DNA from: Camelus dromedarius
Lineage: Eukaryota
NCBI RefSeq assembly: GCF_036321535.1
Contig: NC_087460.1
Coordinates: forward strand, 2,356,001-2,420,000
Reading direction: 5' to 3'
DNA length: 64,000 nucleotides
The stretch's first letter is position 1, and every line of letters begins with the position of its first letter. The translations under genes and the position numbers were made by a program. The notes under the pieces are model-generated. The model searched no databases. It was not told the origin of the DNA and saw nothing but the letters and a program-made list of their open reading frames with translations. Shown in pieces: positions 32,951-39,316 of this stretch.

Positions 32951-32984
32951 GTCACGTGACGGGCGTCGCCAATCGGCGCCGGTC

Positions 32985-33086
32985 TTGTCTCCGCGTTCGG
33001 GCCGGAACCCGGGCGGCGGGCGGAGCGGCGGCCGGGCGGGCCCCGCCGGGCAGGAGAGACGGGCGGAGCGGCGGCGGGAAGGGCAG
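32985..33086 (+). other. RHNO1: RHNO1 putative non-coding exon 1
   Basis: First strong + strand donor after the promoter core: GGCAG|gtgagg; start approximate; other donors lie downstream. Confidence 0.5.
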
Positions 33087-34304
33087 GTGAGGCGGGCGGG
33101 GCGGGCGGGGCGGCGGCGGGTGAGGCGGCCGAGGCGGGCGGAGCGGGCGGATGAGGTGAGTGAGGCGGACGAACCGGGCGGGCGGGCGGGCAGGCAGATG
33201 AGGCGAGTGAGGCGTGTGGACCTGGCGGGCGGAGCGGCGGCGGGTGAAGCGGGAGGATGAGGCGAGTGAGCCGGGCGGGCCGGGCAGAGCGGGCAGGTGG
33301 GCCGGCGGGCGAGGCGGGCGGGCCGGCGGCTCGTGGGGAGGGCGCAGGGAGGCCCCGCGGGGGCGGGACGCGGGGACCCTGGGGACCCCGGGGACCCCGG
33401 GGCCGGCCCCCGGCTGCTCTCTGGCCCCCGGCGCCCCTCCGCGCTGCTCGCGTGTCCCGGGGTCTTCCTCCCGCGCTGGTTTCCTCGCTGGGGGGCCGGA
33501 GTGGTGGGGGTACTGCCCTCCGTTGACCTCCTACCAGCGACCATCCGGGCCCCCGACTATCCTGGCGGCCCCTGGAGCGCAGCTTCTGGCCTCGTTCAAG
33601 TTCCCTCCGTAAATTACACGCACAGCGCGAATCCCGCCTCGGCTCTGGGTCCTCTCCCTCCCCGCCCCTGCAACCCTTTACCGGTAATGAAGTACTTGAT
33701 TTATTAACTTGGTCACACGGTGAGTTGAGCATCTGCTCTGTGCCAGGCCGCGCTAGGATGCAGTGGCAGAGTGGGTCTTTCTTCTGATGGGCGGAGGGAG
33801 GAGCTCATTTCCGAAGTAAACTAGTTTATTTAAGCAATAAACTTAAGAAGAGAAATATAGCTGTGAAGTGATGAATCAGAGGTCAGGGATAGCTTCGCGT
33901 ATCTACAGGAGGGAGACCTTGCGTTCCTTAATGTAGGTGAGAAAGGCTTTTCTGCTGCACTACAGCCGGGGCTTTATGCAGACGAGGGAGACCTCAGAAG
34001 GGACTGAGGTGTGCAGGTCCACGCGGCAGGAGACGAAGCTGGACGTGGAGCAACAGGCCCGTAGCCACCACTGAGGCTTTTGGTTCTTATCCAGAAATCA
34101 AAAATGAGTCTTAAGCAGAAGTGAGCCAAGATCAGATTTGCATTTTAAAAAGGTCCCCCTGCAGGGGGTGCCAGAGTGGGTTAGGGTAGACCAGTTAGGC
34201 TATTGCACTACCCCAGGACAGAGCCGGAGCTTGAAGGGCGGTGGGAGAGGAGGGGAGGGAGGGAGGGAAGAAGGGGAGGGATATTCTTTTTCTTTTGGGG
34301 GGAG

Positions 34305-36135: not shown

Positions 36136-37746
36136 AACAATTGGAGGTGTTTATTACCTGCCTTCTACCTAAAATGTCGGTTCCTTGAGGGTAAAGACTT
36201 TGTCCTTATTTTTCCTCTCCTTCATCTCCACTGTCTAGTGACATAAATCAGAGTCTGTTGCTCTTTTGTTGGTGACTGAATGAATGAATCAGGACTGTTC
36301 AGTGGGACCGGTCTGCCCTGTTGTGTGACCCTCCGGGATGCCAAGTGGCATCTCCCCTTCACCTCCACCTGCTGCATTCAAACTTCTGTCCCACCAACCC
36401 GTGGACAAAAGCTCTTATTAAAACTGATCTGGGTACTGGATTCACTGGACACTTTTGCAGACTTTTTATTACTTTGTGGGGCCTGCTGTCCCTGCCTCTC
36501 TCTCCAGCCTCCCGTCTCTGCCGACACAGCCCAGGTTCCGGCCTCATCGGCTCCCAGGTGGCACAGAACCTTCTGCCTGGTCCGCCTGCTTCCGGGGCAC
36601 TTGTTCTCTCCTTTCACACTGTCGCCAGGACCATCTGCCTAAGAGTCAAAACAAAGGAAAAACAATTGCGCTACTTATGAGACAACTGAAATTTGAACAC
36701 AGGACATTTGGTATTTAATATTTAAGGAAACACACACGTTACTATATGCTAATGTATGTATAAGTACATACAGTATATAAGTATGTATATTTGTATATGT
36801 TAGTTGTGTTCATGGGAACGGTATCATGACTGGGAATATATCGTCAAAATAATAAAGGGGTGGGGAAGTGGGTGGGGTGTGGATGGATCCTGACTGGCCA
36901 TGGGTTGATGGTTGTTGGAGCTGGGTGATGGGCATTTGGGGGCTCATTATACTGTTAACTATATTTTTGTATATTCAAAATTATCTGGCGTAAAGGTTTA
37001 AAAAAAATCCAAGTGTGATCATATCCGTCTGCTTCAAAATTTTCAGTGACTACTTAGGTCAAAGTCCAAACTCAGACGGTACACCTGGTTTTCTGACCTG
37101 ACCCGGACACTGTCCCACCTCAGTCCCTGCAAGTTGTCTTTTCACGCCCTGTGTCCAGCTACGTGGAGTCTGGTCCTGAGTCTGCAGTGCTCTTGTCTCT
37201 CCTGTGTGTGTGCTTGGAGCGCCCTCCCTGTTCTTTGGCTTTTCCCAGCCCTCCTGTACCGAGGCTGTCACCCTCTCCAGAAAGCCTCCCTTGGTGGGGT
37301 GGAAGCACTGTTCTCATTGTTGTAATTGTCTCCCTCTGCTAGACTCTCAGCTCTTTGAAGACAGGGACAGCCTGTGTCCCCGCAGGTGCTTGGCACTCAA
37401 TGGTTGTGGAGTAAGTGGTTATTCATCTTTAAATTCCCAACACCCAGAGTGGTGCTGGCAGGTGCTCGATAAATGTTCATGGGATGAACGTCGTTGAGTA
37501 TGAGCTCCTGTGTATTGAGCTGGTGGTGTGGGTACAGGAAGCCGGTGCGGGTACAGACGCCGGCAGGGCTGCAGGCCCGTAGGGGAACCGGCTGGCAGAG
37601 TGTGCAGGAGTGCTGGGGAGTCACCGGATTATCTTCTCCCCACTTGTGTTTCCTCTCTGCAGGCATGGGTTGGAACTGGAGTCTCTCCCCAGACCTGACT
37701 GCAGCCAGCATCATGCAGTTACTCACTGCTCTTCACTCACCTGTTG

Positions 37747-37914
37747 ATGCCTCCCAGAAAAAAACGCTGCCAGACGGCCCAGAAACCCCAGCTGCTATTC
37801 CACCAACAACCACTAGAGGGCCCCAGACACCGCCAAGGATCTCCCCAGCTTCCTGTCACCCACGCTAGACAGGTGCCCAGCAAGCCCATTGACCACACCA
37901 TCGTCACTTCCTGG
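37747..37914 (+). CDS. RHNO1: RHNO1 (RAD9-HUS1-RAD1 interacting nuclear orphan 1) first coding exon; exon starts at 37663
   Basis: MPPRKKRCQTAQKPQLLFHQQPLEGPRH...QVPSKPIDHTIVTSW|gtaggc. Confidence 0.96.
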
Positions 37915-38761
37915 GTAGGCCATGGGAGTCTTACAGTGACTTTTACTTTCTTAGGGTTCTCAGTGCTGACTCTGCCCAGCAAACCAGGGCTTCCAGAGAA
38001 CAAGGAGACTCCTGGGGGCGGAGACAAGGAGACAGTGTCCTCTTTCTGCCTGTCCTCGGTCATCTTCTCTGGCTTATCTTTTTCCCTAAGTTCAAACTGA
38101 GGTGTGGGTTGCTTGGAATTGGAGTCTCTCTCCCCCGCTGTCCCCTGAAAGAGCTGAGCACGAAGTCTTCACTCCCCAGTAGCTGGGTGAGAAAGCCAGA
38201 TAAATGGCTCAACGAGTCAAAAATGAGCTTGTTCCCAGAGCTTCATGTGTGAGGTGGGGTATTTAGCTAAGTCTTCTCTTTACTGCTTAGTGGATAGAAT
38301 ATGGAAGGAAAGTCCTCAGAAATGGTGTGTGTTATATTCTGACAGTTGAAAAGCCCTGGGAAGAGAACACAGCTCCTGTATGTCAGGGAAGTAGTGTAGC
38401 GAAGGAGCCAGACAGAAGCCTATGCCCTGCCTCAGAGAGCTCTGCCAGGTGCTGGGGGCGACGGTGGCCAGGACAGCCGGGCCCTGCCGTCAGCGTCCAG
38501 AGCGAGACGCTTAGCTGTCCTGCAGCCGTGTGATGAAGTGACAGAGGCGTTGTCCCCTTTCTTGCACACGAGGAAACTGAAAGCCAGGGAGATGGAGTGA
38601 CTTGCCCAAAGCTCATACCCCTTTCCGCCTTCATCCAGTTAGACAGCTTATCTCAGGCCCATTCCTGTAGCGGGCTCCTGCTTGGGATCCTGGCCATTGG
38701 ACGCAGTTTCCTTCGGTTTGGATGTGGCTCTCCCTCACCTTTTCTCACTCCCAATCCTTAG

Positions 38762-39316
38762 GTATCACCTCAGTTTGATACAACAGCAGAAAGCTGGTTC
38801 CCAGCCAACCATAAACGTCATCTCCGAGCCCAGGCCAGGCATTCAAGTCGGAAATCTGCCACCTGCAAGTTTCCACGTCTAACATTTGAGAGTCCACCGT
38901 CTTCCTCCAGGTCAGCCACACCCGGGACCCCCTTAATCAGGGGCTGCCCCAACCAACCAGAAAAGGACATTGCCAGAAGGGCCTTAGTTCCCATGCTCAG
39001 TCCCCAAAGCTGCGGGGAGCTGTCAGCACCTGCACTTCAAAACCTACCTTACGTGTTCACCCCACCTGATATCCAGACCCCAGAGTCGTCCATGAGGGGA
39101 GGGCTCGTGCCCCCAGAGCAGAGGGGAAACAGCCTTCCGAGCGGCTCCCTTCACAGCAGCACTCCCGAGAGCCCCGAGCCCGGGCCCGTTCTGGTTACAG
39201 ACACCCCCGAGGAGAAGTATGGAATAAAGGTCACCTGGAGGAGGCGACGACACCTGTTCATGTACCTCAGGGAGAGAGGGAAGCTGAGCAGAAGCCAGTT
39301 TCTTGTGAAAAACTGA
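38762..39316 (+). CDS. RHNO1: RHNO1 last coding exon
   Basis: ccttag|GTA; VSPQFDTTAESWFP...VLVTDTPEEKYGIKVTWRRRRHLFMYLRERGKLSRSQFLVKN-stop(TGA); total 240 aa. Confidence 0.96.
   Translation, partial: VSPQFDTTAESWFPANHKRHLRAQARHSSRKSATCKFPRLTFESPPSSSRSATPGTPLIRGCPNQPEKDIARRALVPMLSPQSCGELSAPALQNLPYVFTPPDIQTPESSMRGGLVPPEQRGNSLPSGSLHSSTPESPEPGPVLVTDTPEEKYGIKVTWRRRRHLFMYLRERGKLSRSQFLVKN

Follow-up and report, generated by a model that had tools for sequence, protein, structure and literature searches.

An upstream overlapping reading frame with conserved start codons in dromedary RHNO1, orthologous to a translated human ORF and a probable damper of RHINO synthesis

The RHNO1 gene of the dromedary carries, at the very beginning of its exon 2, an upstream overlapping open reading frame (uoORF) of 67 codons that corresponds to an ORF translated in human, and that probably, with a probability that we put at roughly 0.7, acts in cis as a translational damper of RHINO, the peptide being a by-product. 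It was analysed in a window of 64,000 nucleotides, the whole stretch of DNA under study (Camelus dromedarius, contig NC_087460.1, positions 2,356,001 to 2,420,000 of the forward strand), in which a first-pass annotation made from the letters alone had pointed out an ORF crossing the weak RHNO1 start codon. Two upstream AUG codons in the same frame, here named uAUG1 and uAUG2, precede the RHINO start, and it is the conservation of these codons and of their frame, rather than the length of the ORF, that goes beyond chance. ORF length was in fact rejected as evidence, given that a frame of at least 67 codons follows 9.5% of the ATGs of the whole window and 15.7% of those in similar G+C.

The RHNO1 locus, found on the + strand of the window, was recovered from two dromedary assemblies, between which the uoORF sequence is identical. 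The translation of the last coding exon was 100% identical to that of P0001, the Camelus dromedarius RHINO protein (240 aa, PF15319), and when exon 2 and the last exon were spliced in silico the resulting translation equalled P0001. The coordinates of the features discussed here are collected in Table 1. The part of exon 1 that could be placed by alignment sits in the FOXM1/RHNO1 CpG island, where the best donor by homology would be GGGCAG/GT, at 33086/33087, with a G as last exon base that would become position -3 of uAUG1; no ATG occurs in camel 32960-33086. The RHNO1 side of this island (window 33010-33329) also holds an array of GGCGGGCGGAGCGGCGGCGGGTGAGG-like units, with periods of 9, 33, 42 and 47, which places several repeated GTGAG donors downstream of the candidate exon 1 donor.

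Table 1. Features of the dromedary RHNO1 5' region and of the overlapping reading frame (window coordinates)
Feature	Position	Strand	Basis or remark
RHNO1 exon 1, non-coding, inferred 3' part	33039..33086	+	aligned locally with exon 1 of L005, the closest mRNA contig; homology only
Exon 2 pyrimidine tract and acceptor AG (37661-62)	37630..37662	+	sequence; homology
RHNO1 exon 2: 84 nt leader and RHINO codons 1-56; donor GT 37915-16	37663..37914	+	
uoORF, 67 codons and TAG	37665..37868	+	sequence; orthologue of human c12riboseqorf5
uAUG1, -82 from RHINO AUG, context G(-3)..AUGG (G at -3 by homology); first AUG of the predicted mRNA	37665..37667	+	
uAUG2, -34, A at -3, in the frame of uAUG1	37713..37715	+	
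TTGATGCC block with RHINO AUG (37747-49), weak context (T at -3, C at +4)	37744..37751	+	invariant
uoORF stop TAG, +120..+122 in RHINO CDS, 46 nt before the exon 2 donor	37866..37868	+	
Last coding exon of RHNO1: RHINO codons 57-240 and TGA	38762..39316	+	

Intron 2 (37915-38761) is short, with 847 nt in camel. The annotated blue whale isoform X1 (P0004, 269 aa) reads from exon 2 into this intron (SWVGHG...) and then rejoins exon 3, and the camel frame likewise continues into intron 2 as SWVGHGSLTV.... Additionally, a conserved alternative donor, CAG/GTGCCC, is found within exon 2 at 37872/37873 (window 37870-37875), 4 nt past the camel uoORF stop. This donor fits the 'isoform X2' proteins annotated with 226-229 aa in primates, hippo, lemur and bats, from which the PSKPIDH..TSW segment is missing, and splicing at this site would alter the C-terminus of the uoORF in those species in which it reaches +146.

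The junction between exons 1 and 2 was taken from Logan mRNA contigs encoding full-length RHINO in four non-camel mammals (clusters P0007, P0022, P0023 and P0109) and from an intronless retrocopy of the sloth. In the contigs of 4/4 species, as well as in the retrocopy, exon 1 ended in G and was joined to an identical GCATGG acceptor, and the ...TCTCTGCAG/GCATGG junction was kept in every genomic locus compared. For three of these species (leaders of L005, L009 and L016), the contig has uAUG1 as its first AUG. Given this homologous junction and the ATG-free stretch in the camel CpG island, the predicted camel mRNA would also meet G..AUGG as its first AUG. The exon 2 start that had been proposed at 37663 (GC ATG G) was verified in the sequence, where it follows a pyrimidine tract and an AG and has the G at +4, and homology supports its use as the camel exon boundary. 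The G at -3 of uAUG1, which had been made conditional on an upstream exon ending in G, is supplied by exon 1 in all the mRNA contigs and in the retrocopy, and would by homology be supplied in camel as well. The sloth retrocopy itself (L027:5840-6717, record CM026695.1) has an intact 238-codon ORF whose translation is exactly that of the parental protein, and its leader is likewise that of the parent gene, the exon 1-2 junction, the two uAUGs and the entire uoORF included; the parent RHNO1 gene is located on a separate chromosome record (L026).

RNA-run assemblies contained 0.57-0.83 of the sequence words of the exon-containing stretch 37500-38000, and, since 0.41-0.66 of the words of the upstream intron were present too, they do not define the exon boundary. 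Such intron 1 sequence in RNA-run assemblies, together with the repeated GTGAG donors of the CpG island, would be compatible with main RHNO1 transcripts that start in intron 1 or exon 2, or that use another acceptor, so that the camel ORF would be bypassed. However, all mRNA-derived sequences, from the four species and the retrocopy, join exon 1 to the same acceptor and carry both uAUGs, and the camel acceptor and its pyrimidine tract are intact and conserved; a bypass of the camel ORF is therefore regarded as very improbable.

With respect to the anatomy of the ORF, examination of the sequence bore out the initial description. The frame opened at 37665 encodes the 67-residue peptide that had been quoted and ends at the TAG of 37866-37868; a second ATG in the same frame, with A at -3, lies 48 nt past the first; and the RHINO ATG, 82 nt downstream of the first one, is crossed out of frame and has the poor context that had been ascribed to it. 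The three start contexts in camel are gcATGg (37665), agcAtcATGc (37713) and ctgTtgATGc (37747). Thus, the ORF starts in the leader, whose boundary in camel is set by homology, is read in frame 2 with respect to the RHINO ATG and terminates within the CDS at +122, which is the position and frame of a uoORF.

The conservation of this arrangement was evaluated in an exon 2 alignment of 12 eutherian sequences and one marsupial, the Tasmanian devil. The first start codon, uAUG1 (-82), was present in 10/11 eutherians, including camel, a bovid, the P0007 and P0022 species, a carnivore-like species, donkey, rabbit, a rodent and sloth; it is replaced by ATT in elephant and by CTG in the Tasmanian devil. 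The second one, uAUG2, was present in 13/13 therians, had A at -3 in all of them and was always in frame 2, i.e., out of frame with RHINO. It is placed at -34, except for the carnivore, in which 6 additional nt bring it to -40, and the devil, in which 3 additional nt bring it to -37; the frame is kept because these two leader indels are of +6 and +3 nt. No stop codon between the uAUG and the RHINO AUG was found in any of the 13 species. The two tiers of start codons differ in age, with uAUG2 shared with the marsupial, whereas uAUG1 is eutherian and was lost in elephant, and the uAUG2 arrangement is at least as old as Theria. The elephant lineage (L022:5917-5925), in which uAUG1 reads ATT and neither uAUG2 nor the weak main start is damaged, is a natural 'uAUG1 knock-out'. 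The main-start block TTGATGCC was invariant across all aligned species, marsupial included, which indicates that the weak RHINO context is itself conserved. Therefore, the conservation that the first-pass annotation had put forward as a check was found for the upstream ATGs, both of which are conserved in eutherians and uAUG2 in all therians, but not for the position of the TAG, which moves from +89 to +185.

Some variation at the two ends of RHINO was also seen in the sequences compared. In P0106, a rodent Logan cluster, the called protein has MLFIYLL before MPPKK, owing to a third upstream ATG that is in the RHINO frame, seven codons 5' of the usual start. In carnivores (P0015, P0018 and P0023), RHINO has a 14-residue C-terminal extension, with 254-255 aa in total, and in P0044, which is probably a pangolin judging from its match to Manis P0043, the protein has 273 aa with a longer C-terminal extension, which suggests that the ancestral RHINO stop after LVKN was lost in carnivores and in P0044.

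The camel uoORF is the counterpart of human c12riboseqorf5, which is listed by Sandmann et al. (2023, Table S1) as a uoORF of RHNO1 with a single exon of 228 nt, encoding 75 aa that start with MGWNWSLSP. Both ORFs share the host gene, the position at the start of exon 2, the frame relative to RHINO and the single-exon structure, and their peptides are alignable, with intermediate species linking the two. Both peptides begin with MGWNWSLSP and have an internal Met at residue 17, and about 46/67 residues are identical by hand alignment, which is no more than the identity of RHINO between camel and primates (~70%). They differ in their stop, which falls at +122 in camel (67 aa) and at +146 in human (75 aa). 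The human ORF was classified in tier 1B (PeptideAtlas/TransCODE, Table S5), which demands two non-nested HLA-I peptides in addition to Ribo-seq. Of the two peptides, SPNPKANSI has 26 spectra and SQKKTPPAF has 3, 29 in total, and the Ribo-seq support comes from Ji 2015, Raj 2016 and Chen 2020; GWIPS inspection was rated 'Excellent', with an in-frame fraction of 0.82 and a uniformity of 0.89. As SPNPKANSI maps between uAUG1 and uAUG2, human ribosomes initiate at uAUG1. Translation and HLA peptides are documented for the human ORF only, and it is by orthology that we infer translation of the camel ORF. Hence, the overlapping uORF proposed on RHNO1 exon 2, with well-placed AUGs ahead of a weak start, is conserved in mammals, and in human its orthologue is translated, starting at the first AUG. 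The proposal that it was 'undescribed' was mistaken, given that the human orthologue is catalogued as GENCODE Ribo-seq ORF c12riboseqorf5; public catalogues, that of Mudge et al. among them, already list the uoORF as translated and as 'conserved'.

A frame that stays open from the uAUG over the RHINO start in 13/13 species, with leader indels that are both multiples of three, and a human peptide that is made and presented on HLA-I, with its N-terminal MGWNWSLSP common to camel and human, could be taken as signs of a dual-coding gene, in which a functional microprotein of 67-75 residues is what selection holds the frame open for. Nevertheless, no signal of purifying selection was found on the alternative-frame peptide. 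In the 27 leader codons of 10 species, the minimum number of changes per codon position was 20/25/27, evenly spread, and the NG86 dN/dS was 0.57 in the ORF frame, compared with control values of 0.72 and 0.47 in the other two frames, i.e., not below the others. The synonymous rate of RHINO, compared in 11 species, was 0.46 in the overlap (codons 2-40) versus 0.50 in codons 41-240, so that synonymous sites are not suppressed there and the second frame imposes no visible extra constraint. The C-terminus shifts along with the stop, which is found at +89 in the rodent, at +122 in camel, carnivore, donkey, sloth and elephant, at +125 in the bovid, at +146 in several others and at +185, already in exon 3, in the devil. 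This position follows the RHINO codons, the TAG arising in the alternative frame from THARQ in camel or THTRQ in other species, and where RHINO has V or L at the R position that TAG is missing and the uoORF continues to +146. Additionally, the elephant and the marsupial do without the first 16 residues, a Pfam scan of the 67-residue peptide matched no family, and the published record of c12riboseqorf5 labels it 'conserved' and gives a PhyloCSF of -130 in primates and of -1680 in mammals and 0 MS studies (Sandmann et al. 2023, Table S1). Altogether, the codon-position, dN/dS and synonymous-rate tests and the strongly negative PhyloCSF lend no support to the dual-coded microprotein that had been suggested, and a peptide-level function is deemed improbable.

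The leader could also have been conserved as a nucleic acid. Invariant columns represented 37% of the 84-nt leader, 44% of the coding part and 25% of the RHINO third positions, and, since the leader shows fair conservation throughout, at about the level of the coding part, the AUGs taken alone stand out only modestly from their surroundings, and a non-translational element could have a share in this. Such an element, acting in splicing, transcription or RNA binding, would carry the AUGs along, with the ORF as a tolerated by-product of little effect on RHINO. Indeed, a sequence resembling a branch point, TACTAAC (in camel TACTCAC), is conserved within the exon (window 37720-37757), together with a pyrimidine run and, just past the RHINO ATG, a CAG; these could make up an alternative or cryptic 3' splice site, and an alternative 3' splice-site event in RHNO1 has been reported in SF3B1-mutant cells. 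However, when the devil was added to the alignment, most of the leader diverged and only about 1/5 of its columns remained invariant, the uAUG2 ATG and the TTGATGCC block among them, and the frame relation survived the two indels. RNA structure in the leader was rejected, with an MFE z-score of +0.67, a covariation term of 0.03 in the alignment fold and a 6-bp pairing between uAUG2 and the main AUG that is broken in some species and shows no compensatory changes. Moreover, human ribosomes initiate at this site and, under the scanning model, are necessarily removed from the RHINO start. An element of this kind, with an ORF that matters little to RHINO, is considered unlikely.

Thus, a cis-acting translational damper is the reading that we favor. 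According to this mechanism, uAUG1, located two bases into exon 2 and in a strong context, with G at both -3 and +4, would be the first AUG met by scanning ribosomes. Initiation at uAUG1 or uAUG2 would take the ribosome out of frame over the weak RHINO AUG, with termination some 120 nt within the RHINO CDS, and ribosomes that start at either codon would be unable to make RHINO. The RHINO start would then be reached only by those that leak past both uAUGs, which would keep RHINO scarce. In the usual NMD rule, the limit is set at 50-55 nt before an exon junction; as the camel uoORF stop lies 46 nt before the junction, termination there should not trigger NMD. A damper would suit the low abundance of RHINO, which links 9-1-1 with TOPBP1 and brings in polymerase theta for mitotic end-joining. 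The level of this protein is tightly limited: it is restricted to mitosis and degraded by APC/C, with a half-life of ~1 h unless phosphorylated. Counted against the damper, besides the general conservation of the leader, are that the known control of RHINO abundance is post-translational, through APC/C degradation and through stabilization by ATR/Chk1-dependent phosphorylation, and that elephant and marsupial do without uAUG1.

Comparison with known uORF systems helps to place the RHNO1 arrangement. In ATF4, uORF2 is an inhibitory upstream ORF that runs over the main start out of frame, and its switch needs a short permissive uORF1 upstream, after which delayed re-initiation skips uORF2. By analogy, the RHNO1 uoORF resembles uORF2 in that it, too, would be inhibitory and lies over the main start in another frame. 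However, an ATF4-type re-initiation switch was rejected, since there is no AUG before uAUG1 either in the leaders of L005, L009 and L016 or in camel 32960-33086, and this mechanism is thus not open to RHNO1 in the leaders examined. With no short upstream uORF that would allow such a bypass, RHINO synthesis is expected to rely on ribosomes that leak past two good AUGs and reach a poor one. RHNO1 was absent from the supplements of the PRRC2 leaky-scanning paper.

The POLG uoORF starts at a CUG codon and encodes a conserved peptide. POLG/POLGARF (Khan 2020, Loughran 2020) is like RHNO1 in that a long ORF from the leader overlaps the main CDS in another frame and the main ORF relies on leaky scanning, and the GENCODE roadmap presents the POLG ORF as identifiable with PhyloCSF. 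The RHNO1 ORF, unlike POLGARF, starts at an AUG and shows no peptide constraint, and none of the marks of dual coding of the POLGARF type, i.e., peptide selection, depressed main-frame dS and a conserved stop and length, was found in it. With the general repressive uoORFs of vertebrates (Johnstone, Bazzini and Giraldez 2016) it shares a leader AUG that is out of frame and a stop in the CDS, with a conserved start and a non-conserved peptide. As relayed by the GENCODE roadmap, uoORFs repress the CDS more than other uORFs (Johnstone 2016), because they terminate past the CDS start. RHNO1 differs from these general uoORFs in having two stacked AUGs in good context, in one frame, before an invariably weak main AUG.

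It had further been suggested that the ORF is a stress- or cell-cycle-tunable brake. In this respect, the stacked uAUGs could form a gate in which RHINO synthesis rises when the stringency of initiation or the extent of leaky scanning changes, be it at G2/M or during replication stress, a possibility that is doubtful at present. If it were tunable, the gate would add a translational layer to the mitosis-restricted presence of RHINO, whose rise at mitotic entry was called unexplained by its discoverers. A literature search retrieved no paper addressing a stress- or cell-cycle-tunable brake on RHINO through a uoORF, and none on the function of an RHNO1 uORF or on the effect of the uAUGs on RHINO by reporter or editing.

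As a discovery, these findings are modest. To the existing catalogue entry they add the two age tiers of the uAUGs, the invariant weak RHINO start and the lack of any sign of peptide selection in targeted tests. Nonetheless, a conserved uoORF that intercepts most of the scanning ribosomes would represent a further, so far unstudied, layer limiting RHINO and, if so, 5'UTR variants in this region could shift RHINO dosage.
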